Shown: piece after piece, positions 3,305 through 38,964 of the stretch
How positions within the stretch are numbered: position 1 is the first letter of the stretch
Layout of the letters: each line of letters opens with the position of its first letter
Assembly (NCBI GenBank): GCA_025558095.1
Contig: JAIVFI010000038.1
Coordinates: 310,001 to 374,000, forward strand
Reading direction: 5' to 3'
From: Hyaloraphidium curvatum SAG 235-1
Taxonomy: Eukaryota; Fungi; Monoblepharomycota
Length of the DNA stretch: 64,000 nucleotides
Translations under genes and position numbers: made by a program
The notes under the pieces: generated by a model
The model's input: the letters and a program-made list of their open reading frames with translations, nothing else
Told to the model about the DNA's origin: nothing
The model's database searches: none

Positions 3305-4464
3305 CTATCCCTTGGTTTTCCCCCGGCAGACTGCCTTGTGGTCTGGCCACGCCGCGCGCTGGCACTCCTTGCTGCAGTACCGCGCCGTCCGGCAGCCAGC
3401 GCACCTCTTGAGCTCGGCGGACCTCGTCGGCCGGTCGCACTTGTCGCAGCGGTCCCGTTCGTCGGGAACAAGGATGGTCTGCATGGGCCCCGGGGTCTCG
3501 GAGCGGGTTGATCGACCGAGCCGGGCGCCGTCTGAGTCTGTTCGTCTTCCGTGAGCAAGAGTATCCAAGTCGCCGAGTTCAACAAACTCGTCGAAAACTG
3601 GTATATGGATTCGGGCTGGGTGCGCTTGGCCTCAGGAATGGTGAGGTACAAGGCGTTGATCATGAAACCCGAGACGGCCCGAACGGCCCTGCGCGGACGC
3701 CAGCTTTCCGGCGGCCTTCGGTTGTATCCCCTGCTTCCGACGTAATGAGGACAACGGTGTTTACGGCGCCAAACACAAAAGAAAGGCAAGCATTGAGGTC
3801 GCTCGCGGTGCGCTGCCATTCATCATCCATGTTCGCGAGAAGCCACCCGTTCAACAGCGGATGATGCGATAGTGCTTCGACGAACTGGAAGTCATCCCGC
3901 AATTTCAGCAAAGAACTTCCAAGAGCCCCGTGGATTCGAAGGAACAACGCGATACGTCGCTTGCACAGAGAAGCAGTCCGCTTTGACGCGAGGTCTCGCG
4001 CTTCCGGAAAAGCTCCACTTCCGGTGCAGGGACTCGCTCGTCCACACGGCCCGCACAATCGAAAAGTGGTCCCTAAACACGTCCCGCATCACGTCACCGA
4101 AGAGCGCACGTGGTGCGTTTGCCCACTGCCCGGAAAGTGAACCGTCGGGGAGGTATCGCGCGAGAGTTTCGAGGTACTCTGGTTCAATCTCTTCTGCAGA
4201 CTCGTCGACAGCGTGGCGAACAGCGTGGCGAAGAGCGCAGCACGGTTCCACGGCTTCCCACAGCACGTTCGGCAACGATGTAAACCATGCGGTGACGCGC
4301 TCCTTGGTCCCGGCGTCCGTCGGACCGGATTCGAGAGCCGCGACGAGTTCGGAGAAGCCACCGCGTAACGCGGCCATCTTGGAGGCCACGTCCGCCAGGA
4401 ACAGGTCGCGGTCGAACGAAGGCCACGGGTTCGGCGCGCCGGTATCTTCCGATGAGGTTTCCAT
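3305..4464 (-). CDS. MYND-type zinc finger protein (multi-exon)
   Basis: C-terminal CDKC...CAGCRTARYCSKECQRAAWPDHKAVC is a canonical zf-MYND. The upstream helical region (METSSEDTG..., ATG 4464) is spread over three frames that join through short GT..AG introns with weak donors. Confidence 0.65.
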
Positions 4465-4634
4465 GATTGTCGGTGGGGAGGCCAACGCCACGTCGTCGAT
4501 GGTCGAAGTGATGGCGTGCGGCCCGGCTCCGCGACGGCGAGTACAGAAGACGCCTGGCTCCCACACGATGAGGCCGACAAGGGTACAATTCTCTACAATC
4601 AGCTCCCCAATACATCTGCTGTCCCAACTTTGCA

Positions 4635-5555
4635 TCAGAGCAGAGGCGCCCTGGAGTGGATGGACGCGGCGTCGTCGGCCCCGCCTTCCTCGCCGTCCTG
4701 CGAACTTCGCTTCTCCCCCGAAGACTCGCCCGCCTTCTTCGCGGCCTGCTCCTTCTTGTACGCCGCCATCGACGCCTCCACAACGGCGATCATCTTCGCC
4801 TCCTTCTGGTCCTGCAGCGGCATGGACCTGTCCGCGCCGAAGTCGTAGGCCGAATCAAAGATCTCGTGGCCCTCCTTCGGCCCGTCGCCTTTCGCGCCGG
4901 TAAAGTTGCTCCTGATGTACCGCCTGGCGGCGAGGCCCGCCTGGCTCCGCACCACGCCCCAGGCTCGCTGCGCCTTGGCCTTGCTCGAGTTGTCAAGCGC
5001 CTGCATGCCCACGCGCTCCCTCTTCTGCCGCGTCTCCTCCAGCAGCAGCGCCGGCGGCAGGTCCGCCACGCCGTCGGGCTTTATCGAGCGGGTGATCCGC
5101 GACCGCACCGACTCGGCGGCCTTGGAGAACACCGACGCCGAGTCCTTCTTCTCCTGCTCCGCCTCGGCCGCCCGGAGCTCCCGCTCGCTGGTCTTGAACA
5201 CCGCGTGCTCCATGTCGGGCCACTGCTCGGCGATGATGACCTTGGCCTCGGGGTGGTCCGCCACGAACTGCTCCTTGGACGGCGCCGCGACGCCGACCTC
5301 CTCGGCCTTCTTGACCACCATCTCCTCGAGCCGGCCGCCGCCGGGGATGTCGGCGTTGTACGACCCGCGCCCAGCCTTAACGGCGTGCGCGGCGTTGACC
5401 GCCACCGTCTCGTGGAACTGCGCGAGGAAGTCGTCGAGCGAGTCCTCCCGCTTCGCCCGCGGCAGCATGATGAGCGGGCCGCCCGACTGCGACTGCTTCC
5501 GCTGCCATATAGGCTTCTCCTTGGTGCCGACGTTGATGTACTCCTTGGCCGACAT
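4635..5555 (-). CDS. Hypothetical charged protein
   Basis: Intronless ORF from ATG 5555 (MSAKEYINVGTKEKPIW...) with strong GC3 codon bias and natural composition. No motif recognised. Confidence 0.65.
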   Translation of the reverse strand: MSAKEYINVGTKEKPIWQRKQSQSGGPLIMLPRAKREDSLDDFLAQFHETVAVNAAHAVKAGRGSYNADIPGGGRLEEMVVKKAEEVGVAAPSKEQFVADHPEAKVIIAEQWPDMEHAVFKTSERELRAAEAEQEKKDSASVFSKAAESVRSRITRSIKPDGVADLPPALLLEETRQKRERVGMQALDNSSKAKAQRAWGVVRSQAGLAARRYIRSNFTGAKGDGPKEGHEIFDSAYDFGADRSMPLQDQKEAKMIAVVEASMAAYKKEQAAKKAGESSGEKRSSQDGEEGGADDAASIHSRAPLL

Positions 5556-7244: not shown

Positions 7245-7662
7245 GGGAATGAGGAGGGGTCGTGGAAGACGTAGGACATGTGCCTGGCGGTGCGCGACAT
7301 CGCGACGAGAACTCGATAGAGCAGCTGCGGTCCTCTAGACGGAGAGCAGGTCCAGCGAAGGGGGTTGCTCGTCAGCAGACGCGCTCCGATGCGTGATTCA
7401 TCACGCGCAACAGATCCTGCTGCATTGCCGGACCCGATTCGACGAAGGATTGTTGACAGCATAACTGAGGCGACGAAGATGATTTCCCAGGAGCTTCGTG
7501 TTGATGTTGACTTCGCGCGGAATCTCGAAGACGCGCCTGCGCGCCGGCGCACAACGAGGACCACAAACAACGCCGCGCCTTAGGGCAGCCGCCAGGCCGC
7601 GGAGCTCGTCCTCGCTGTCGGCGGATCTCATTTTTGTCCAATTGGACAGTCACGACCGGACC

Positions 7663-8731
7663 ATGACGCGGACGTTCATCCTGGTCCATGGAGTGAGTCT
7701 GTTCCGTCCGGCGTCAGTTCGTTCCCCTCACAGCGCTCGCTGGGCTCCGTACCGTACCTGCGCGCTCGTCTCGAAAGGCCTGGCACGGGGGTTGGTGCTG
7801 GTCCCGTCTCGTCGGCTTTCTCGCGCTCCACGGGCGCGTCATCGCGCCGGACTTGCCTGGCTCCGGAGCTTCCTCGAAACCCGCGGGCGAGGTCACCCTG
7901 GCGGACTGCACCAAGGCCATCGTGGACATCATTGATACGGTGTCGGAGCGGGATAGGATTGTGCTCGTGGGACACTCCGCGGGTGGAGCAGGTGGGCTCT
8001 TCCGTTCCTCCCGCTCCGCCATATGGGTTCACAGATTGGGTGCCTCCAGTGATCACCGCTGCCGCCGAGCAGCGGCCGGAGCGCATCGAGCGGCTTGTCT
8101 ATGTCACCGCCTACGCTCTTCAAAACGGGGAGTCCCTTCTCAAAGCTTCTTCGACGGACAAGGAGTCCCAACTCAGCAAGCAGATGCAGATGTCGAAGGA
8201 CAAGAAGACGATCACTTTGAAATCGGCCGAGGTGCGTATTTGGCACTCGAGAGACCAAACGGAACCAGCTAACCTTTCGTTGCTCGCCGCAGGGTGCCCG
8301 CCCAGTGCTCTACAACGACCTGGAAGACAGGGACTTCCGATATTGCTTTTGGCGACTCACGCCTCAGTCGAGCGCCGTTTTCCGGGAACCGGTGGCGACG
8401 ACGCCCGAGAGATGGGGTCGGATTCCAAAAGTGGGCCGCATTACTCGTTGTCTCCGCCCGACTTTCATTGACGCCAACATGCCAGACCTACATCATCTGC
8501 ACAAAGGACAACGCGATCGGGCCGGCCGCCCAGCGCCAGATGGCCCTCCAGTTCTGTGGCTGCAAGCTGGTCCCGTACTCCGAGGCCGTCTCCCTCGTGA
8601 CGGCGCCGACGCCGGTCAATCTGGCGCTGGAGCTCAACACGGGACATTCCCCGATGGTAAACAAGCCGGATCAACTGGCGCGGTTGATAGTGGTGGGCCT
8701 GGAGGGGGGCAAGATGATGGCGTCATTGTAA
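7663..8731 (+). CDS. Alpha/beta hydrolase (methylesterase / Abhydrolase_6-like), multi-exon
   Basis: MTRTFILVHG|AWHGGWCW, PDLPGSG, nucleophile elbow GHSAGG, YIICTKDNAI and catalytic His in TGHSPM. Introns begin GTGAGT, GTGGGC and GTGCGT. Confidence 0.9.
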
Positions 8732-22425: not shown

Positions 22426-23332
22426 AGGACCGTGATGGTCCAACTTGTTCATGGAAGGAAGCCCATTGGATTGCAATACGACATTGTTCTCTTGCCGTGT
22501 CGGCACCCGGATCGCAGCATCCCCTGACCTCCAGCAATCTATTGGGGAACGGAGAGGAGTGTCAGTTAATGGTCGACAAATCCCGGCAGCCGCCAGTCCA
22601 TCGCCGGGATCATTTTGAAGACTGAAGGTGTTCTTGTTTCTCCTCACTACCGAAGGTTCGGAGTGGTGCATAGAATATCTAATCCTCTCCCGAGCTCGCT
22701 CCTGCGTTCGCGACGCGGGTGCCTGACACTCACCGAGGAACATGCCGGACACGCAGACCAGACGGAGCGAGCAGCATCGACCGGAACCGCCGTTCCATGA
22801 AGCAAGCGAAGCAGCTGAAGTGCCGTCGGGAATCACTGGAAGTCAGGGAAACGAGGTCAGCGACGCGGTCTTTGTCACGTGTCCCGTTCCCGCAGTCCAG
22901 AGCCGGAACTCAATCTTAAAAAGCTCGGTTTGTGAATCAACACGGTGCTTTCAGACAGCAGTTGGAAAATTGACTTCATCCTCGTTCTCGAAATGTCCCA
23001 TCCCCGTCTGCAAAGGGTTCTCACCATTGGACGACGTTCGCGACTCCGGCCGGCCACCAATCGGCTCGGGGTCAGGGTGCATCATGGCAAGATGTACGGC
23101 AGCGTCGTCACGACGCGCCTTCGAGGAACATCACGGCATCGCGACGAGGAGCCGTTGTTGTCGTTTGTTTTCGCGGCCCGCACTCATCACTCCCTCGATA
23201 CCTCGCGATCGGCAGTCCTCTGTTGAGAACGAAATACAACTCATAATGCCATTCATCTGGGTATCCTTTGGACACTTCCCCATCTGATATCAAGAGTCCT
23301 CTTGAACAGAAAATTTTGAAAGATCGGTTTCT

Positions 23333-27134: not shown

Positions 27135-27410
27135 AGCGAGGGAGATGCGGACGGATGAGCGAATTATCTTGCAGAAAAAGTCAGATTGTCAGGTTCTGTA
27201 TGTTTGAAGCAAGAGACACGACCGTGGCGAGCTTTTGACCCTTCGCTTGGGCGGAGTTTCGGTCACCCAACTTCCGAATTCCGAGCAGACAGAAGACCGC
27301 TCTCTACCCACTTTGCCTGGAGGAGCTCCGAACGCTCTTTGGAAGCACGAGCGAGCGGCCCGCCGTGGGACTTTTGGCTCTGAACGTCGTCCTTGGGGAG
27401 CCGCCGAAGG

Positions 27411-28342
27411 ATGCCGACCCCGTCCACGTTCGGTCGCGTCGTCGTCACCTCGCACCCGCAGTACTCGGATGCGGCGCACTCCCGGTTTAACCGCTTCCCG
27501 CGGCCGTCACCGCGGTTCGCGACGGAGTACTCGACGATGTTCAATGCCGCGGTCGTCGGCGCCAAGAAGAGGCCCGTCCTGAAGTCGGGCAAACTCCGCT
27601 GGGTCAAGGAGAAGGAGGGCCCGTCGGAGCGGCAGCAGGTTAAGGAGGACAGCGTTCCTTCGATGAAGAAGGACGAGGTCCCGGATGAGGCTCCGATCCG
27701 CGACATGACTTCGTTCGAGGTGCACCACGTCGTCGGCCGGTCGCCGCATGCCCTGGAGAGGGCGGAAACCCCGAGCGACATGGTGCCGGCGGGCATCGTC
27801 ACGCTTGGTGGTCTTGCATACCCCAAAGCAGGTCCGGAGGAAGACGTCGGTGAGCACGACACCTTCCGTTTGGGTTGTAACTCCGCCTCAATTCCGCCCA
27901 CTCTACGCCAGCCAAGCAGCCCCTCACGAAGGAGAACCGGCGCAAACGCCGGGATCCCGAACTGGACCAGTCTGTTCTGGCAACTGTTCCCGGGAAGGAC
28001 TACGAAGCTACCGGGCTTGTGTGGGGTGCAATGGTTGAGAAGAAGGACGGCCACGGGCCGGCCGGGGAAAGCGGGCAGGAGCCCCATGCGTCGGACGCCG
28101 ACTGGCAGAAGCTCATCCACGTGGATGGATCCTGCGGTCCCGTGGTTGCGCGGCTGAGGGAGATCGAAGAGAAGAAGTTCGATTTGATAACCGGTACGAA
28201 CCTCGGCGCCGTGTACGGTCACCACGCCCTGACGCGTTCCTCCAGGGGAACTCCTGACCCCGGAACAGCAGAAGCACAGGCTTCCGACCTTCGTTGCTCT
28301 CGGCAACCAGAGGGCTGTGATTCCGTCAACCATGAAGCTTGA
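27411..28342 (+). CDS. Hypothetical protein (probably spliced)
   Basis: ATG 27411 (MPTPSTFGRVVV) opens a codon-biased ORF with a GTGAGC donor at ~27850. A later frame (DADWQKLIHVDGSCGPVV) is plausibly a downstream exon. 3' end uncertain. Confidence 0.4.
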
Positions 28343-28590
28343 GAAGGAGCTGAACGTGGGTTGCTTCGAAAGCTCTGACCCGGCTCGAGGCCAAAGTGCT
28401 TTCCCAGACTCGAGACAAGGGCTACAACATCCTCTCGTGGACGTAGCGTATTCTTCTCGTCAAGTTGCATCGTCTTTGGTACCATCAGTAACTCATCATG
28501 TAGTTCTACCACCAACAAAAGCACTAAGAGTCTACCGCATTGCACCCCATGACTGCACGGCTCCGCCGTGCCTACCGCGACGAAAGACAA

Positions 28591-31500
28591 CTACGAATCG
28601 TCGTCCAATCCCAGGTTGTTCCCCTCGTCCTCGGCAACGTCTTCCGCGAGACCGTCGGCATCGAACACGTCCGCTCCACCCTCTCCGCTTTCGCCCTCCT
28701 CATCTTGAGGCTCTGCCACGGGATGTGCAGCAGAGGGAGCGCCCGTTGGAGGCACCGGTCTCCAACAGGTCATCAGTGCCGGATCCCGTCCGCCAGCGAG
28801 GACCAGCGAATTCCCGTCTTCGTTTGCGCGAACGTAAGAGTTCCGAATGCTCCTCGAGCGCAGGGAAAAGGTGAGGCCGGGGCAACCAGCGGCGTAGATC
28901 GGTCTCGAAGGTCCTGGTGTGGGAAGGAAGCATGCGTCGTCTTTCCTCCTCAGCTTGTCGGTCACGATGAGCTTCGAGCGGTTGTCGGGGTCGACGGCGA
29001 CGAAGAAACCGGGCTTGGCGACGCTCTCGAAGGTAAAGTGGTAGTTGGCGCCGCAGATCGGGGCCAGGACCTTGAACGCGGCCCGCTTGTCGTCTTGCTG
29101 CACCGTCAGGTTGCCGCGGAAGAGGCCAACAGACAAGCTGTCCAAGTCAACGGCAATGTACTCTCGGTCCACGAGTCCGGTGGAATGGAAGCTGATCAAG
29201 TCGCCCAAGTTGATCGACTCGGCATTGATCCGAGGCCGGAACGCCTGGCCCCGCATGACGGCCGCCGAAGCTTCGCCTTTGACGCCGCAGGTGGTCACGC
29301 GCAGCTTCCCTGCCTTGGTGGCCGTCATGCACTTGCCGTCGCTCGCCGCGGAAGCGATGGCGATGCTCTCCGCCGCGATGGGTGAGCCTCCGTCCGGCGC
29401 GGCGACGACACCGGCGTTCAGAGACGACAACTGCCCCGTGGCATTGTCGTAGCGCCAGACGCCGTTGGGCAGGTCCGAATAGCACGGTGTCAGCACAATG
29501 CTGGACCGCGAGTTGACCGCCAAGCAAAGTCCGGAACTTGTCCGGAAGCTCTGCCCCAGAGGTTCCGCCGTCGACTGTCAAGTCGCGGAATCAATACCAC
29601 TGAACTCTCCAGCTTCGACGGCAATCTCACCAGGAAGATGGTCGCGTCGACCTTCTTCCGCAGCCTGCAAGCCGGGCCTTCACGGGAAAAGGCTCCGACG
29701 GCGGTCCCACAGCTCACGTAGCGGTCGCCAAATCTGATCCGGAAGTCATTGTCCTCCCCGCCGGCAAGGCCGGGTGCAGGTCCCTGGGAAGCCAAACGTG
29801 AGAAGGCAGTCATGAAGGCGGCGGAAAAGACATCACCTCGTCGTATCCCTGCGTCAAGGCAGGCACAACAGGAAGTTGATATGCCGATATCCGTTCCCCG
29901 AAAACTTCCCTGTCGCTGAGCCCGTCGAAGAAGTCTTCCGGAAGGGCACCGCCGCGCATCTGAAGTCTGCGACGGATCTGCTCCCTATGGAGCTCGATGC
30001 CGTCATCCAGGGTCATGTCGCGGGAGTCGAAAAGGATAGTGTCCAGCCCGTCCAAGAGCTGCCGTTTCCGAAAACGGAAGTGGCCGGGTGCCACAAAATC
30101 GACGTCGGCGAGGTCCCGCTTCGAAAGCTGCAGCAGCGTGAGCGCCTTCTCCGCCGCGCCACGCACGTTGCGGTCGAAAAACTCGCGCGCTGCCTTGCCC
30201 ACATCGGAAGCGTCGAGCGTAAAGTCCACGTCCACCTTCTCCCCGAAGAAGACGCCCTTGATCCGGATGCCGACGGATCCCGCCATGAACTTCGAGTTGA
30301 AGTCGGCGTCGACCGAGCCGACGAACCCGGCCGCGCTGAAGCTGATCATGGAACGCACCCGATCGCCCAGGAAGTCAGCCATCTTGGCGGCAGCCTTCAC
30401 GCCCTCCGAGATTCCCGCGAGACCCTGCTCCGAGGCCTGCAAGGCAACGGTCGCAATGTCCAAACCCCCTTGCGCAACGGTGCAGGCGCTCTGGCAGGCA
30501 GTGTTGACCACCAAGCCCGAAACCATGTTCCATCCCCTGCAGGCTCCGTTGGATATCGCCTGGACCTTGGCAGCCAGCTCGTTGCGGATCCGTTCGGCTT
30601 CACGCCTCGCGGCTTCGGCTGCTTCGCGCGCGGCACGTTCGGCCAACTCCCTGGCCCTTGCTGCCTCAGCCACGAGGCGTTCCTGGGCCTCCCTTGCAGC
30701 CCTCTCCGCGGCGTCCCGGATCCTTTGCGCCTCGCGCTGCGCCGCCTGAGCTGCCTCGATCGCCCTCCGCCGAGCTTCCTCCTGGAATCGTGCAGCGGCC
30801 TCTGCCGCTTCCCTTGCGCGTCTCTCGGTCTCCCGCGCCGCGTTTTCGGCTGCGATCCTAGCGGCTTCTGCCATCTCGCGCGCGCGTCTCTCCGTTTCGT
30901 CTTTCACCCGTTGAGCCTCCGCTTGCGCGGCCGCCGCGGCCGCGGCCAAAGCATCTCTGACCCTCTGTGCCTATGTTGAAATGACAATGTGGTTTGAAAC
31001 GTGGAGAAGACTTTAAGCTCCCGATCTCACCTGCGCTGCAGCAGCAGCAGCCATGGCTTCCTGGGCCCGCCTCGCTTGCTCCTGGGCCGCCTGCTGTGCA
31101 GCAGCTGCGGCTTCCTGCACGCGCCTCGCTTGCTCCTGGGCAGCCTTTTGGGCCGCTGCCATGGCTTCTTGCGCGCGCCTCGCCTGCTCTGCCGCTTGCT
31201 GCTGCACTCTCTCGGCCTCGCGCTTCGCAGCTTCCGCCGCTTCGCGAGCTTGCTTTTCCGCCAGATCCTTCACGCGCTGCGCCTCTCTCTGTGCAGCCTC
31301 GGCGGCCTCACGAGCCCTTCGCTCCATTTCCTCGCGCGCAATGCGCGCAGCCTCCGCCGCGCGGGCCGCCTGCTCGCGAGCAACACGCTCCGCTTCCGCT
31401 CGTGCCCTCGCCACGGCCGCCGCAGCCTGTTCGGCAGCGCGTCGTGCGGCGTCCGAGACGGTGTTGACCGCGCCCGAAGCAGCATTTCCGACGCTCCGAA

Positions 31501-34500
31501 ACGCGTTTGTAAAGGCTGACCAGCGCTTTTCCAGAACGATCGCTTCGAGGCGCTCTGCATCAGTGAGGTCCGCAGGGTCTTGCGGGGGCACAAGTGCCTC
31601 CTCTTGAAGCGGCAGCTCCGAACGGCGCACCCGGCGACGTCCGCAAGAGACTTTTTCCGCTGCTTCCGTGCACTTGTCCTTCCAATCGCACACCGACTTC
31701 CGCGCGTCGTCCACGGCACGTCGCTTGCTCTCAACCTCCCGCCTCGCGGAGTCCAGCTGGGCTGCGCCCTGCTTGGCCCAGGAACCAAGTGCTTCGAGCA
31801 CGCCGTCGACGAATTGCTGGAAAGACCGCATGTCGAAGTCCCCGGTTACAGAGAACTTGGACCGCGAACCAATCGCAGCCTGGAAGCGGAAGCTGACATC
31901 GAACACAAAGAACTTTTGCGAGAAAGAAAGGATGTACTCGGTCGGCGTGATGGAGACGATCGTCTCTAGCTGGAACATGAAAACCTTGACGTACGCCGAC
32001 AGCGTGAGTCCGAGCTCGGTGGCGCGGTCATACTCCAAAGCAACGTTGAGGATCGGTCCGCGGTCCGTGTCCTGCTTGCTCCGGTAGATCTCGATGAGCC
32101 CTCCCGCGAGCTTCACCGGATCAAGTTCGACAAGTAGCTTGATACCCCTGCCCATGCTGACGGAGATCTGGACCCGGGCTGTGACGTCCAAGATGTTCAG
32201 AGTCCCGTTCAGGAAAAAGCCCTGCTGATACTGCCGTCCCGGCGCCGCGCAGTTGCCCCCGGGGCACAGCGAAATGGATGTGGGTCCCGAGAACCCGCTG
32301 TTGAGCAGCGGCGCCGGGATGATGGAGGGGTCCGGCGCCACGTCCGTGAAGGCCAGGATGATGCGCTTGACATCCAGCTGCGTCATGTCGCCGGCGAACC
32401 AGTTGTTCTGAGGGTTCACGGGGTCGAACGACACGTAGATCGATCCCCCGATGCACGGCGCGTCCGGAAGGAAGGAGAAATCAGGGCCGTAGCAACCGCG
32501 CCCGATGGCGACCTGGCCGCCGACGAGGATCGACGGCGCGCCCAGGGCTGCGGTTATCCCGACCTCCAAGACAATGTTCCCAATGCTTAAGCGATCCCAA
32601 CCGAAAGCACTCCGCCAGATTCCAGTCATGGAAGCACCCAACACAACGCTGGCCCCCTTGACCCCGATCCGGGCTTGAAGCTGCAGCGGATCCCGGTCGG
32701 CATCGACGGTCAACGCGATAGAGCCAGAAAGGAACAGGGCGGTTGAGGGGAAGGAAGCGCTGAAGCCGACGGCGGTCAAGGTGAGCCCCGAGCTGATCCT
32801 GAGGTTCGAGACGGCGGCTGACAGCGCGATGTCCGGGGGGCTGATTCCGGCCCCGATCTGTAGCCGCACGTCGCGGCCGAGCAGGGAGACCATTACGTCG
32901 CAGAAGCCAGAACCTCCGCAATCGGAAGGGAGGCCCATTTGGAGACCGATCGACAGGCCGCGCTTGATCGAGGGAAGAAAATCGAGGGGCGCGTCGAGCA
33001 CCATTGGTCCGTCCAGGGCTAGATCGCGAGACGACGCGACGAAGGCCAGCTGCAAGAGCCGTCACGAATCAGACACCATCGATGTAGGGGCAGGAATGCA
33101 CTAAACACTCACAGTGCTGCCGGACGCCACAAGGTTGAGGCCAGGAATGGCAAACCCTGGCATCATGAGCTCCAGGAGGTCGGTGAAGAAGCTGCCCGGA
33201 AGCGCCAGGGCGAGGGTCCCCTGGAACCGGCCTCCGCTCTGCTTTCCCGCGAGCAGTTGCACCCGAGCGTTCTCAAAGAGGTCGGCGGTGGCGGCCACGC
33301 GGAGCATCGCCTGGCCGCTGCCCAGCGTGATGGAGATGTCGAAGTCGTTGAGCGCGAAGGTACGGAGCTCCAACTTGTCGATCAAGGCTTCGACCGGGCC
33401 TTCACGAATGTCATCAGCTCCACCATCAAGCTGATGGGTGCCGAGGACTTACCGGAGGGGAATATGTCGGCCCCGATCCCCGAAAGCAGCTTGTCGAATG
33501 GGAGGACATCCGAGCTGGCAGAGATCGTCCATGACTTGGAGCTCGTGGGCCCCTTGCCGGGCTTGCGGCGCGGTGCGGTCTTGGCCTGCGCTGCTCGGGC
33601 GTGGAGGCGTCGGGGTTCGGCGAGGACAAACGTCCCGTTCAGGCCCTGCCGACGCAGGTGGTCGCGGTAGAGATGGTGGTTGAGGTGCACCAAGGGTACG
33701 TCATGGAGCGAGAGGTGGCCCATGTAGCCAATGTCGGGCAGCTGTACCACGTGGTCCAAAGACCGAACGGTGAGCACCTCGGGGAGCAGGTCCGCCGCGG
33801 CGTCAGTGCCATCTCCAAGCTCGACAGCGGAATCTCCGTCCCTCGGATCCTCCGACCAACTCTGCTGACGGCGGTGAAGACGGCGGCGGCGTGACGCCAC
33901 TTCAGTGTCCGACTCGGGCTCGGCAAAGTCGTCCAACACGTCGGCGAATCCCACGCCCGCTTGCCTGCCGATGAAGACTTTCAGCGGGTTCCCCGCGAAG
34001 CTCCAGTCACCGTCGATGCGGACGTCGACCTCGCGCTGGGACGAGAAGGGTTCGACGACGGTAAAGACGACCGTCGGGTTGTCGAGCGACAGCGGCACGA
34101 GGTCCGACTGGAGCAGGCCGGGCGGCAGGAGAGCCCGCAGGGAAAGCCGCGTCGTGCACGGGGAAGCGCCCGGCCTGCAGAAGGAGAAGGCGAGATCCTT
34201 GATCTGGATGCCGAGCAGGGCGTCGAGGCCCGAGGAGAGCACGGGGATCTGGGGCAGGTCCGCCAGGGCCGCGTCGGCGCCCATCGCCTTGAGCGCCGAG
34301 CCAATCGTGGTCACCTTGTCCTGCATGCCGACACGCAGGATCATGCTCGCGGCGTCCGACATGAGGGGCAGCTTGAACGGCAGGCCGTTCTTGAAGAAGG
34401 GGAGGACGACGCTGCCCGAGAGCTCAAACCTGATGCTCGAAGGAGCATCGAAGCTGAATGAGGCCGAGTTGTTGACCAAGCCGAAGCCTGCTGGCAGCTC

Positions 34501-36954
34501 GATGTCGCTGGCGCTCAGGAGGATGCGCGCGGTCTGCACCGCGGGCGGTGCGGCAAAGTCGAGTGCGACGTTGCTGAGGGAGAGGATGTCGGGAAGGTAT
34601 CCGAAAACCTCGGGCAGGGCGACGTCCAGCTTGCCCAGGAGCCGCGTCGTGAGCCCCATGGCCGACTTCCACGAAAGCTGCAGTCCAGGGACCCGCAGTG
34701 CGAGGCGCCGTTCCGCGAGGGAACCGCCGCCGGCGCATTCGAGAGACACACCCGACTCGGCGAGCTTTGCCTTGACCGCGTTGGTAGCGAATTCGCCGAC
34801 CGAGGCCTTGGCATCCTCCAAGGAAGCATCCAGGTCGCGAGAGCGCAGCCGGCGAGCACCCTGCTGTTGGTCGGCCGCGGATTCCGGAGGCGCTGACGCA
34901 GAGCCCGCTTCCGATCCCGGGGCCGAACCTGTCCCCGAGTCGGAACCCGACCCGGTGGTTTCCGCATTCTGCTGCCCTTCCGAGGGCTCCTCTGCTCCGC
35001 CGTCCGCAGCCGACAAGGCGAGGACGACCTTGACCTCGGGATCCAGCTGGAACCTGTATATCGGCTTCGTGATGCACTCGATCGCGGCCTTGAGGTCCGG
35101 CGGCAGCAGCGCGCTCGCCTTGCCGAACGCGTCCAGGTCCGAGACCACGAGCACCAGGCCGGGCAGGTCGCCGTCCCCGCGCACGCTGGCGCAGGCGCTC
35201 GTCGCGGCGACCTTCTGCTCGGGGGTGAGCGCGCCCAGCGCAGACGAGAGGTCGGCGAGGCACGGGGCGACGGCGGTGCGGCTGGCGTTGGCCTGCTGCC
35301 CGAAGGCCGAGGCGGCGTCGGGTTCCATGCCGAGGATGCGTGCGAGGGCCATTGCGGCCGCCTGGGCGGGGTTGAGTTCCTTCTCACCCTCGGCTGGCGG
35401 GCTCGGTCAGGGCGACCGTCAGAATACGCCGAATCAGAACCAACCTTGCCCTTCTCCTTCGCTCTCCCCTTCCTCGCTCTCGGCTTCCTCGCTCTCGCCT
35501 TCCTCGCCCTCGCCTTCCTCGCCCTCGCCTTCCTCGCCCTCGCCTTCCTCGCCCTCGCCTTCCTCGCCCTCGCCTTCCTCGCCCTCGCCTTCCTCGCTCT
35601 CGCCTTCCTCGCCCTCGCCTTCCTCGCCCTCGCCTTCCTCGCTCTCGGATTCCCCGCTCTCGCCTTCCCCGCTCTCGCCTTCCCCGCTCTCGGCTTCCCC
35701 GCTCTCGGCTTCCTCACCATCGGCTTCTTCAGCTTCCCCCTCGGCCTCGCTCTCGGCTTCCTCGCTCTCGGCCTCGCCGCTCTCGGCTTCCTCGCCATCG
35801 GCTTCCTCGCTCTCGGCTTCCTCGCCATCGGCTTCTTCAGCTTCCCCCTCAGCCTCGCCATCACCAGCCTCGCCTTCGCCGGCCTCGCCTTCGCCCGCCT
35901 CGCCTTCGCGGGCCTCGCCTTCGCTGGCCTCGCCTTCGCTGGCCTCGTCGTCGCCGGCCTCGTCGTCACTGGCCTCGCTTTCCTCGTCCTTGTCCTCCGA
36001 TTCCTGGTCCCCGGAAGCTGGGCGCGCAACGTCAGACTCGTGCCGGGCCGGTCCGGTCCGGCCATCCCGAACGAACCGTCGTCATCCGCCTCCTGGTCCC
36101 CAGATTCCCGTCCCTCGGATTCCTGCTCCTCGGATGCGTCCTGGCCCTCGGGTTCCTGCTCTTCGGATCCGTCCTGGCCGTCGGATTCCTGCTCTTCGGA
36201 TCCGTCCTGGCCGTCGGATTCCTGCTCCTCGGACTCTTGCTCGCCGGACCCTTGTTCCGCGGAAGCTGGCCGCATACTGCGTCAGCGTCGGCTCGCGGCG
36301 GCGGGGCCGCAACGTCGACAAACCTTCGGCCTCGCCATCCCCGTCCTCCTCACCCTCATCGCCTTCCCCGCCATCTTCATCCCCGCCCTCGCTCTCCCCG
36401 CCCTCCCCGTCGCCGCCGCCCGCGGCATCGTCCTTGATGTCCTCGAGCTGGGCGTGGATGGCGGCCAGCCGCGCGGCGATCTCGTCCGCGACCGCCTGCT
36501 CCTCCTCCACCGCATCCGAGGTGCTCTCGAGGGTGTGGTCGTCGGCGTCCAATTGCTCGTCCGAGTCGTCGTCGCCGCCGCCCGAGGTGTCCGGGTCGCC
36601 GGCCGGGTCGTCGCCGGAGCCCTCCCCGTCCTCTCCGTCCCCGGTGTCCCCATCCTCCTCGGAATCGTCCCCATCCTCCCCATCATCGTCATCGTCGTCC
36701 CCGTCCCGCCTCCTCAGACCCTGTCCTCCGCCAGGGGTTCCCACTAGGGGACCCGCCAGCCCGGGCGACGCAGGCGGCCGCAGCGCGTTCGGAGCCGGCA
36801 ATGCCCTCGCCTCGACGAGCCCAAGGGCGGGGCCATCGATCCCGTCCCGCCGCGGCGCCCACGCGAGGAGCAGCAGCAGGCACGCGAGGGCGCGGAGCGG
36901 CGTCCCCCACGCGGGCCGGGCGGCGGCGGGGCGGCGCCCGCAATGTCTTCCCAT
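28591..36954 (-). CDS. Giant (~2,600 aa) secreted multidomain protein: acidic repeats, beta-rich body, coiled coil, ricin-like and AbfB/CBM42-like beta-trefoils
   Basis: ATG 36954 with hydrophobic signal [14 protein letters not shown]. ORFs 33382-35352, 33101-33385, 31013-33055, 29810-30949 and 28591-29523 are linked by eight ~50-62 nt GT..AG introns (e.g. GTAAGT ~33452, GTGAGT ~33112, GTGAGA ~31030, GTGATG ~29836, GTGAGA ~29631). Confidence 0.75.
30590..31450 (-). repeat. Imperfect coding repeats (A)REAAEAA(R/Q)REAER forming a long coiled coil
   Basis: Repeated ~11-aa-period E/A/R/Q units on both sides of the ~31000 intron. Confidence 0.8.
35455..35990 (-). repeat. 15-bp minisatellite encoding (G/A)E(G/S)EE acidic repeats
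   Basis: Plus strand reads (CGCCTTCCTCGCCCT)n with variants. On the minus strand it reads [10 protein letters not shown] in an exon of the giant gene. Confidence 0.9.
36110..36235 (-). repeat. 33-bp tandem repeat encoding [11 protein letters not shown]
   Basis: TCGGATTCCTGCTCTTCGGATCCGTCCTGGCCG-like units, about 3 copies. Confidence 0.8.
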
Positions 36955-37105
36955 GCGGCCGGAAGACGGAGGGCGCCGGCGGAGGCCTACGGCGCCCCCA
37001 TCGCTGCCCGCGCGAGTTCTGCTGCACCCATCGACGACCCGAGCCGCGACCTCCCTGGCTGACGCCAAGGGATTGGTCGTTTGGTCGCCATCGACTTCGG
37101 AGGCG

Positions 37106-38964
37106 ATGGAGGCGAAGGTGCCGCCGCTGATGGGCGGCAAACGCGTTCCGGGCGATGGGAACGACGTGCCCCGCCGCGAGGGCGGCCGTTTTCCGTGGCG
37201 CGCCGGGGTCGCTGCCGTCGCCGCGTGTTTCCTGCTCGTCTTCCGCTGGCCGGCCCCGCACCCGCACGACGCGCCACGATTCGCCTACTCCAACGACGAT
37301 TTGACGCGTCTGCTCAAGCTGCGATCGCATTCGGACGTGTTCCCGCCCCGCCCAACGGGCGCCGGCGTCCCCCAGCCGGATGATCGCGGAGCCGCCGGCG
37401 GGCTGTACCCCGAACGCCGCCGCGTGGCCATCGTCGGCGCCGGCGCCTTCGGCTCCTCCCTCGCCTACTTCCTGCACCAGCTCATCCCGCCGACGGACCT
37501 CTCGATCACCGTGTTCGACAAGCTTCCCCGCGCCGGCGGCCGCGTGCGCGCGCTGGGCATGTACGACCCGTGCCGCGCCAAGCCCGTCGCGTTCGAGCTC
37601 GGCGCGGCCATCTTCGCGCAGGGCAACCAGTTCGTCGCCAACCTGACCCGCAAGTTCGGCCTCGACCTCAAGAACGAGTCGGACTTCGACCCCGACCCGC
37701 CCGGCACCCGGCTCGTCGGGCTGTGGGACGGCGAGTCGTTCCTGTACCAGTTCTCGGGCGGCTTCTGGAGCGGGCCTGCGGCCTTTTTGCGGTGGGGGCT
37801 GTCGATCGTCAACGGGCGCAACATGGCCGCCGAGGCCGAACGGGAGTGGGACCAGGTGTACGGGCTGCTCGCCGACGGCGAGACGTCGGGCAGCCCGGGT
37901 GCGATGCTGTCCAAGCTGGGCGGGCTGGACACGCTGGTGGCCGGAATGTCGGCGAGGGAGTACCTCGAGGGGCGGGGGCTGGGGGAGCGGTACCTGGACG
38001 AGTTTGTCGAGGTGCGTTGGCGGCGAGGATCGCAGGTTGATCTATCGGTCGGTCTGACGAGTTCCATCTCCGTTTTCACACAGCCCGCGGTTCTGGTCAA
38101 CTACTTTCGCCCCCTCTCGGCCATCAACCCCCTCGCCGCCCTCGTCAGCATGACGGCCGAGTACTCGGCCGCGTACCAGGTCCGCGACGGCAACTTCCAG
38201 GTGTTCGAGGAAGCCCTGCTCGCCTCCGGGGCCGGCTGGGTCAAGCAGGAGGAGATCGTGGCGATCAAGAGGGAGCCCGGGAGGGGGAAGGCAAAGTACA
38301 CGCTCGTCGGGGCGGACGGGAAGGACTGGATCGGATTCGATGACGTTGTTTTGGCGGGGCCGTTGGTGGGTCCCGCGTTTTCTGCCGCCCGCTCTGTTCA
38401 CAATCTGACCACTCGGCTTCGCAGCACACGCTCAACGTCTCCCTGCCCGACGACATCCCGCCGCCCTTCTACCCGCGCCCGTACGTCGAGATCCACGTGA
38501 CCATCGTCGTCGGCATCCTCTCGCCGGAATACTTTGGCCTCCCCCCGCTCGCCTCCCCCCCGCTCAACATCCTCACCCCGCAAAACACCGCCTCCCCCGT
38601 GCCCTTCCGCTCCATCTCGGTGCTGCACCGCTTCCCGTGCCTCAACCACGGCGCCAACATCACCGTCACCAAGATCTTCTCCGCCCTGCCCATGCAGACC
38701 GCCGACCTGCTCGCGATCTACGAGAAGGTGTACGACCTGGCGCGGTACGCGTGGCCGGCCGCTTACCCGGACCTGGCGCCGTATTCGAGCCCGGAGGAGA
38801 TGCCGGGCTTCGGGCCGTACGGGGACGGCGTGTACTTCGGGGGGGCGGGCGAGGCGCCGTTCAGCTGCATGGAGGGGCAGGTGGTGGCGGCGAGGAACGT
38901 GGCGGGGCTGATCGCGGAGCAGGTTGCGAGGGCGAAGAAGGAGGCGGCGGGGACGAGGGGATGA
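37106..38964 (+). CDS. PCYOX1: Prenylcysteine oxidase / lyase (FAD-dependent)
   Basis: ATG 37106 and an N-terminal TM. Motifs RVAIVGAGAFGSS, GGRV, FELGAAIFAQGN, GLWDGESF, QVRDGNFQVFE and E.PFSCMEGQVVAARNVA. Two introns. Confidence 0.8.

Follow-up and report, generated by a model that had tools for sequence, protein, structure and literature searches.

A spliced 2,636-residue gene of Hyaloraphidium curvatum predicted to encode an ApoB-like beta-sheet joined to tandem trefoil domains

The beta-belt of human ApoB100 is a continuous amphipathic sheet, approximately 4 nm wide and with strands averaging 11 residues, whose inner face rests on the lipid core (PMC11839476). The belt comprises 120 strands and was solved in 2024 (PDB 9e9r, 9coo, 9bde); ApoB, vitellogenin and MTP, which are large lipid transfer proteins (LLTPs), also possess a Vitellogenin_N region, consisting of a beta-barrel and a helical domain. 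The AsmA-like or repeating beta-groove (RBG) lipid transporters (TamB, YhdP, VPS13, Hobbit) are likewise large and dominated by amphipathic beta structure; these are intracellular or periplasmic bridges with a periodicity of five strands plus a loop. Two consecutive beta-trefoils are found in tandem lectins such as botulinum HA33 and the B chains of type II ribosome-inactivating proteins (RIPs), where they are carried on a toxin or enzyme chain, while the AbfB trefoil (carbohydrate-binding module family 42, CBM42) accompanies a glycoside hydrolase in the GH54 enzymes. The locus described here lies on the minus strand in the freshwater, chytrid-like fungus Hyaloraphidium curvatum SAG 235-1 (Fungi; Monoblepharomycota), at 28591–36954 of a window of 64,000 nucleotides (assembly GCA_025558095.1, contig JAIVFI010000038.1, forward-strand positions 310,001 to 374,000); all coordinates below refer to the window. 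It encodes a member of an undescribed family that is assembled from recognizable fold types and is not LLTP, RBG/AsmA or Pfam Ricin_B by the tests run. Its architecture most resembles a beta-belt of the ApoB type to which tandem trefoil lectins are attached.

The gene was reconstructed by listing the open stretches of the minus strand, enumerating the frame-preserving GT/GC..AG introns between them and reading the junctions. This produced nine exons (36954–36324, 36265–36077, 36017–35445, 35393–33453, 33399–33113, 33049–31031, 30970–29837, 29783–29631 and 29574–28594), followed by a stop codon at 28593–28591 and separated by eight GT..AG introns of, in order, 58, 59, 51, 53, 63, 60, 53 and 56 nt. 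The ATG at 36954 is the earliest in its open frame, and the joined frame of 2,636 codons is unbroken across all junctions. A homologue, L009, was found on a 12-kb Logan contig from an organism of lower G-C content, and its open reading frame (ORF) is uninterrupted across the equivalents of exon 7, exon 8 and the start of exon 9; therefore, the acceptor at 29575 was adopted for intron 8. An alternative acceptor at 29551 (giving 2,628 aa) was rejected, as both L009 and the public protein described below retain the extra residues.

Splicing was observed in RNA contigs from one public run (X1) that held the locus, compared over 30955–36954. A contig of 7,749 nt aligned in four segments (31030–33049, 33113–33398, 33452–35393 and 35445–35513), with joints reading CT..AC on the plus strand, which is GT..AG on the minus strand; introns 5, 4 and 3 were thus spliced out. 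The 30-letter loose end of this contig at 31030 reads, when reverse-complemented, as the first bases of exon 7, and therefore intron 6 was removed as modelled. Beyond the loose end there are a further 3,432 nt, which leaves room for exons 7–9 and approximately 1.16 kb besides; this excess past the stop codon (~27430–28590) could be a long 3' untranslated region or a merger with the minus-strand ORF at 27263–28333. A second contig (506 nt) joins exons 2 and 3 with intron 2 removed, and a third (447 nt) covers exon 1 (36406–36809). The gap between contigs at 35513–35618 falls within a 15-nt tandem repeat.

The last 65 residues of exon 5 and all of exons 6, 7, 8 and 9 correspond, with zero differences, to the 1,494 aa of KAI9004474.1 ('hypothetical protein DFJ74DRAFT_416990 [Hyaloraphidium curvatum]'; hereafter P0006). 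This letter-for-letter identity confirms introns 5–8, such that introns 2–6 rest on the RNA contigs and introns 7 and 8 on P0006 and L009. Since P0006 begins at an internal methionine in the midst of a conserved domain (exon 5), the public model is truncated at its 5' end, and lacks the N-terminal 1,142 residues. Intron 1 (36323–36266) is predicted from sequence features, having a GTTTGT donor, a CTGAC branch point and an acceptor context that nearly copies that of intron 2. Intron 1 and the start of exon 2 are near-copies of intron 2 and the start of exon 3 (36018–36323; same phase, CAG|CTTCCG acceptor context), indicating an exon duplication within the acidic region.

The locus is, with high confidence, a single transcribed and spliced gene belonging to the family described below. 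An earlier note, made from the DNA alone, had proposed one gene of ~2,600 aa with eight canonical introns, and the reconstruction agrees with its coordinates and intron count. The note also called the gene hidden, which holds for the N-terminal 1,142 residues, these being absent from P0006, and fails for the C-terminal 1,494, which were already a GenBank hypothetical protein. The order of parts that it gave, from a signal-like start to lectin-type domains, was borne out for every feature listed. These features are as follows, all on the minus strand and with approximate boundaries between protein parts; P0001 is an H. curvatum paralogue that was used for structural modelling, and pLDDT is the predicted local distance difference test score of such models.

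28591–36954, minus: whole coding region; 9 exons, 8 introns, 2,636 aa (rebuilt model, spliced RNA contigs, P0006 identity).
36856–36954, minus: signal-peptide-like N-terminus, residues 1–33; Arg-rich n-region and Leu-rich core of ~13 residues.
35445–36711, minus: polyacidic low-complexity region, residues ~82–465, exons 1–3; contains introns 1 and 2 (the latter 36076–36018).
35394–35444, minus: intron 3, 51 nt; removed in the 7,749-nt RNA contig.
35002–35391, minus: helical Cys-containing module, ~130 aa, residues ~466–595; kept in L009 and paralogues.
33907–34710, minus: N-terminal block of the beta body, ~268 aa, residues ~693–960; aligns with P0001, P0002 and others.
33559–33906, minus: charged insert, probably disordered, residues ~961–1076; conserved VPL.H.NHH.Y motif and polybasic runs; the P0001 equivalent has pLDDT <50.
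31760–33558, minus: conserved beta-belt module (predicted), residues ~1077–1637, ~560 aa; ~28 amphipathic strands; contains introns 4 (33452–33400) and 5 (33112–33050).
31550–31759, minus: long helix and Cys cluster, then a polybasic run; a 65-residue helix in the P0001 model.
30566–31492, minus: E/A/R/Q-rich coiled-coil-like helix, 289 aa, by composition; contains intron 6 (31030–30971).
30071–30565, minus: Cys helical hairpin and short amphipathic beta piece, from alignment with sponge and amphioxus members; low model confidence.
29837–30070, minus: linker starting with a conserved dibasic FRF[RK]KR; candidate kexin-type site, kept in P0005 and L009.
29236–29750, minus: beta-trefoil 1, ricin-B-like, with three Cys-pair subrepeats; contains intron 8 (29630–29575), while intron 7 is 29836–29784.
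28738–29226, minus: beta-trefoil 2, CBM42/AbfB-like, by VIA superposition; pLDDT 70–93.
28594–28737, minus: acidic C-terminal tail, by composition.

The fold of the body was modelled with AlphaFold2 on P0001 (1,072 aa), which contains both beta blocks without a splice join, using an alignment of 56 sequences. Mean pLDDT was 73.6; residues 410–1000 mostly exceeded 90 and were nearly all beta, comprising ~28 strands of 8–13 residues with tight turns and a few short helices, followed by the 65-residue helix. The first block (residues 27–218) was also beta, with pLDDT of 60–90. DSSP assignment of the model gave uninterrupted runs of 10 and at least 14 strands without a crossing element. The strands were strongly amphipathic: alternate faces differed by 3.44 Kyte-Doolittle units, against 1.67 ± 0.21 in shuffled strands, with mean hydropathy of +2.6 on one face of the sheet and -0.8 on the other. 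The predicted core is a long, single-layer antiparallel sheet, with ~40 strands in two blocks and with one hydrophobic and one polar face. A pair of cysteines in the beta module is near-invariant across the family (C586/C590 in P0001 numbering). In one animal member, P0013, the first half of the body can be aligned with the second (27% identity, E = 2e-9), and therefore the body arose from an old internal duplication.

When the P0001 model was compared with the PDB by Foldseek, human ApoB100 ranked first (E = 2.7e-4, Foldseek probability 0.93) and generic outer-membrane barrels followed. In a second-look alignment by VIA, residues 2833–3358 of the ApoB100 beta-belt (9coo_A) matched with Z = 12.9 and a root-mean-square deviation (rmsd) of 5.9 A over 279 aligned residues; this belt segment was the sole match to combine a high score with a low rmsd. 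An exhaustive VIA search returned barrels of 16–26 strands with Z of 9–11, but at rmsd of 12–20 A, and a vitellogenin-derived pigment protein with Z of 8.1 and rmsd of 5.4 A. In the second-look alignment, barrels scoring about as high as ApoB100 superposed at 14–20 A; over the two comparisons, barrel matches had Z of 9–13 and covered 250–340 residues. A closed barrel of the outer-membrane type was rejected on the rmsd of these matches; the host is moreover eukaryotic and the protein has a signal-like peptide. The likeness to ApoB100 lies in a continuous single-layer amphipathic antiparallel sheet with strands of ~8–13 residues and short turns, in the interruption of that sheet by inserts, and in the secretion, here predicted, of the protein. 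The differences are that the Hyaloraphidium sheet is some 10 times shorter, that it has no Pfam match to Vitellogenin_N, and that the family, unlike ApoB, occurs in fungi and protists without known lipoproteins; lipid binding is a prediction here.

The earlier note had offered two possibilities for the body, an AsmA/TamB/VPS13-like groove or another elongated sheet, and the confidence and amphipathicity of the P0001 model favour the latter. In a shape search of the Atlas, clusters of AsmA, TamB, YhdP and YdbH reached template-modelling (TM) scores of only 0.23–0.27 (0.23–0.30 with porins included). No profile of Chorein_N, VPS13, ATG2, AsmA, TamB or YhdP matched at E up to 1 when Pfam was applied to the exons, P0001, the L009 ORFs and relatives. 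Large size, amphipathic beta dominance, a weak likeness in shape and an internal repeat are all shared with the RBG transporters, whereas the five-strand periodicity is not, and signal peptides and extracellular domains occur instead. RBG/AsmA membership was rejected, given the want of a family match, the TM scores and the runs of at least 10 strands without a crossing loop. Searches for other sources were similarly blank: Pfam, applied to all exons, the paralogues, the L009 ORFs and 30 relatives, found nothing on the body and otherwise sub-threshold Ricin_B and coiled-coil noise only, and sequence searches of the PDB with P0001, the C-terminal region and the family profile gave coiled-coil or chance matches only. 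Feature matches in the ESM Atlas, to unnamed Bacillota clusters at 0.90 (borderline) and to named ones at 0.80 or below (DUF6603 at 0.78), were treated as chance.

The C-terminus was modelled separately from residues 880–1494 of P0006. Mean pLDDT was 47.5, and the model is poor for the hairpin module and linker, for which no claim of fold is made. Foldseek returned 386 matches at E<1e-3 and the top 50 listed were filled by beta-trefoil proteins. Proteins with two trefoils (HA33, type II RIP B chains and the lectin part of mosquitocidal toxin) span both domains with Z of ~17, the Foldseek value for HA33 and the RIP B chain being E ~1e-9 (about 4e-9). The lectin-like domains of the earlier note thus proved to be two beta-trefoils by fold. 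Both HA33 and the RIP B chains share the consecutive arrangement, and ricin B shares the three Cys-pair subrepeats also; however, their trefoils are oriented differently (rmsd 11–12 A), and in H. curvatum the pair is attached to a giant beta-sheet protein. Trefoil 1 matches Pfam Ricin_B (PF00652) with E = 9.8e-5 and 23.0 bits, which is below the gathering cutoff of 29, and has a single G-V-W-like motif. Trefoil 2 superposes on the arabinose-binding domain of GH54 arabinofuranosidase (1wd3_A: Z = 17.6, rmsd 2.5 A, 144 aligned, 22% identity) and on CBM42 (3kmv_E: Z = 17.6, rmsd 2.3 A), the AbfB/CBM42 fits covering 132–144 residues at 15–23% identity, while Pfam AbfB (PF05270) gave no match to it at E<=1. 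Unlike GH54, there is no glycoside hydrolase partner. Sugar binding is plausible on these models, most so for trefoil 2.

The family was defined by searches run exon by exon, with P0006 and with P0001. Four proteins were recovered when exon 6 was used in a word search (E of 1e-123 to 1e-144), among them P0001 and the L009 ORF; the same search with exon 4 was blank, which is uninformative as known relatives were likewise missed. An exhaustive profile search recovered 479 clusters at E<=1e-3, of which 227 reached 1e-10 and 85 reached 1e-30. Nearly all matched at profile positions ~360–930, that is, the end of exon 4 with exons 5 and 6, and the match typically lay in the C-terminal half of proteins of ~1,000–1,100 aa. 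The named members are all eukaryotic: the sponges Oscarella pearsei and O. lobularis, several Branchiostoma (amphioxus), the choanoflagellate Bicosta minor, the rhizarian Lapot gusevi and Hyaloraphidium; many further members occur on contigs from metatranscriptomes and from assemblies of eukaryotic size. Homologues, for which the earlier note had suggested looking, are therefore present in fungi, sponges, amphioxus and protists. Its statement that no named family could be recognized stands for the body, on which no Pfam family fell in any member scanned and for which there is no solved relative, while the novelty of the architecture does not, given a large eukaryotic family and ~10 paralogues. 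No paper on the beta family was found, and none of relevance on extracellular RBG proteins or on LLTPs in fungi or choanoflagellates.

Long animal members carry additional VWA, EGF_CA, F5/8 type C, HYR, ephrin-receptor-like and TNF domains (Pfam), and short metazoan members have clear signal peptides. These partner domains and signal peptides, together with the near-invariant Cys pair, point to an extracellular family. The animal members that were compared (sponge P0011, amphioxus P0158 and P0025) end just after the helical hairpin and beta piece; therefore, the FRFRKR linker and the trefoils are additions, seen only in proteins of the chytrid type (P0005, L009 and the paralogues).

The same order of parts is distributed over three large ORFs in L009. 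The first runs from a hydrophobic N-terminus through a charged low-complexity region into the Cys helical module, the last two sharing one ORF; the second contains the beta body, uninterrupted; and the third holds the helix, hairpin, linker and the start of trefoil 1. The low-complexity parts vary in length between lineages. In H. curvatum the polyacidic region (381 aa) contains 186 D/E against 7 K/R, with tandem repeats of 15 nt and 33 nt inside it, and E/A/R/Q make up 83% of the 289-aa helical expansion, which is missing or far shorter in L009. The charged region of L009 alternates acidic and basic blocks where that of the window is purely acidic, and a Cys-rich insert with repeated C..FCC.G motifs lies just before its beta body (7403–7900), which the window gene is without. 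The helical Cys module matched nothing in Pfam; in the window gene it is separated from the first beta block by a linker rich in Ser, Gly and Ala.

Approximately 10 paralogous loci were found in the H. curvatum genome when the 31.9-Mb assembly was searched, and at no fewer than 9 the body and trefoil pair are ~3 kb apart on the same strand. They include sites on C1 (~124–169 kb), C3 (~65–69 and 219–234 kb), C22 (~510–517 kb) and C21 (~204 kb), with inverted pairs on C1 (two) and on C3 (one, face to face). The C22 and C3 paralogues open with a like signal-like peptide, acidic stretch and Cys module. Some paralogues have in-frame stops (TGA/TAG) within matched stretches, and the C21 locus appears to hold the trefoil part only. 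In the C3 paralogue that contains the P0001 gene, an unrelated-looking ORF of 637 aa (C3:213000–222999, 3491–5401) stands between the signal/acidic/Cys-module part and the beta body; it could represent an insertion, or else an independent gene by which the paralogue is split.

Taken together, the best explanation overall, and one that we put just short of an even chance, is a single expressed gene for a protein of the secretory pathway, in which an ApoB-like belt would lie on a hydrophobic surface and the trefoils on glycan. Entry of the 2,636-residue protein into the secretory pathway is most likely, judging by its N-terminal sequence, and the protein would then be secreted. The hydrophobic face of the sheet would be laid on a membrane, on a lipid particle or droplet, or on a hydrophobic wall layer, as the ApoB belt does; this lipid-surface mechanism, suggested by the modelled faces, is held rather more tentatively than the explanation as a whole. 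The trefoil pair would fix the protein to glycan, whether of its own wall, the wall of another cell or a substrate, while the polyacidic region and the E/A/R helix could serve as spacers or a charged brush. The conserved dibasic motif at the junction of family core and lectin extension may serve as a kexin-type processing site. Polybasic runs were observed at three domain borders (31550–31600, 33850–33900 and 30060–30075), the first and third being kept in the paralogues and L009, and such conserved polybasic and dibasic runs may be kexin-type cleavage sites.

Several observations weigh against this explanation. The probable signal cleavage site carries proline at +1, and intron 1, which joins the signal peptide to the rest, is crossed by none of the RNA contig joints listed. 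The fold model is of P0001, a paralogue of 48% identity, rather than the chain encoded in the window. The likeness to ApoB extends to the fold but not to the sequence (5% identity): single-protein and profile queries of the PDB revealed no link to LLTPs or to any solved chain. An amphipathic meander of any kind, if long and running up and down, might find its best match in ApoB. We infer from the rmsd patterns alone that the sheet forms an open belt, rather than one that closes on itself or is buried in a dimer. Trefoil 1 was modelled at low confidence. The sugar site of ricin B depends on an Asp after the conserved Cys (C-[LV]-D-V) and on a Q-x-W motif; none of the three subrepeats of trefoil 1 retains this Asp (CGTA, CLAV, CMTA), and it is likewise replaced in the paralogues, so that 'lectin-like' is valid at the level of fold.

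The strongest competitor, somewhat less probable than the lipid-surface mechanism but to be taken seriously, is a structural or adhesive protein of the wall or matrix. The sheet would then be self-buried, as a dimer, oligomer or closed super-barrel, forming a rigid scaffold without lipid handling, and the trefoils and polyacidic region would bind wall polysaccharides and cations. The VWA, EGF, F5/8C and HYR partners of the animal relatives are typical of matrix and adhesion proteins, and the family is multi-copy with variable low-complexity spacers. Z scores of 9–13 to many large barrels indicate barrel-like local geometry, and a 16-stranded porin fits residues 423–768 with an rmsd of 6.0 A; against this, barrels generally superpose at 12–20 A where the open ApoB belt does so at 5.9 A, and a hydrophobic face of ~40 strands would be costly for a purely structural rod. 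Nor was any known wall-anchoring signal seen, although a glycosylphosphatidylinositol signal was not looked for. A protein of defence or attack is improbable by comparison; here the trefoils would bind the glycan of a foreign cell, and the sheet, with the helical hairpin and beta piece, would insert into or disrupt its membrane. A lectin trefoil joined to a membrane-active module is a common toxin design, and structural matches to the trefoils included lectin regions from HA33, mosquitocidal toxin, Cry35/Tpp, Cry78 and Vibrio cytolysin. Expansion in amphioxus and sponges resembles that of many innate-immunity families, and one member has a weak SipB-like coiled-coil match. However, no pore-forming family was matched by sequence or fold, the animal members compared are without lectins, a continuous single-chain sheet is unlike the known oligomeric pore formers, and the helical module was poorly modelled.

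Two further possibilities concern the integrity of the gene and the class of its product, and both are very unlikely. Were the locus to comprise more than one gene, one of them perhaps coding for a small, acidic secreted protein and another for the body, the 2,636-aa chain would never be made; this is consistent with the lack of a listed contig joint across intron 1, with a deposited model that spans the C-terminal 1,494 aa only, and with the capacity of RNA contigs to merge adjacent transcripts; one runs ~1.16 kb past the stop. The spliced contigs argue otherwise, one joining exons 3 to 7 and beyond and another exons 2 and 3; the frame is unbroken at all joints, the deposited start is an internal methionine within a conserved domain, and homologues and paralogues keep the order of signal peptide followed by body. 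The least probable reading of all, and one that is disfavoured, is a true RBG bridge transporter (VPS13/ATG2/Hobbit/Tweek, AsmA/TamB) anchored by the N-terminal hydrophobic segment. A size of ~2,600 aa, the amphipathic beta content, the YhdP, AsmA, TamB and YdbH clusters in the Atlas shape search and the ancient internal repeat of the body would all fit, but the TM scores are no higher than 0.27, no Pfam match appeared at E<=1, and strands run 10–14 at a time without a crossing loop. In addition, the N-terminal hydrophobic segment has ~13 residues, which is the length of a signal peptide, and the relatives have extracellular domains and conserved cysteines of the disulfide type.

G-C content of the window is ~60–75% across the gene. 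A plus-strand ORF at 33905–38500 (1,531 aa) overlies it and was rejected as an antisense artefact of high G-C content, the splice joints reading CT..AC on that strand. From ~37.1 kb the same plus-strand frame enters what is likely to be a genuine gene in head-to-head orientation, bearing a GAGAFG motif of the Rossmann type and resembling FAD/NAD-binding oxidases; the ATGs of the two genes are ~150 bp apart. Elsewhere in the window, a borderline Rfam match to SNORD36, a C/D-box small nucleolar RNA, was observed at 22905–22987 on the minus strand (E = 0.69; 30.7 bits, where the gathering score is 30).

These results extend the public gene model from 1,494 to 2,636 aa, adding a signal-like peptide and half of the body. 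The family to which it belongs contains at least several hundred clusters, from chytrid fungi, a choanoflagellate, a rhizarian, sponges and amphioxus, and is without a Pfam model; the one close structural counterpart of its confidently predicted core is the lipid-wrapping ApoB100 belt of 2024. If the sheet does not bind lipid, these proteins would still represent a large extracellular scaffold family deserving a name and a structure. If it does, early-diverging fungi would gain an unexpected extracellular lipid-handling protein, and there would be a second, far older and far smaller system in which to study beta-belts on lipid surfaces. It is conceivable, although we consider it rather unlikely, that the family represents an ancient class of extracellular amphipathic beta-belts, independent of ApoB and vitellogenin, that coats, packages or moves lipid or hydrophobic material outside the cells of fungi, choanoflagellates, rhizarians, sponges and amphioxus, and to which the chytrid branch added a kexin-separable lectin pair for targeting to glycans. 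In that case, belt-type lipid scaffolding would not be an animal invention tied to lipoproteins.

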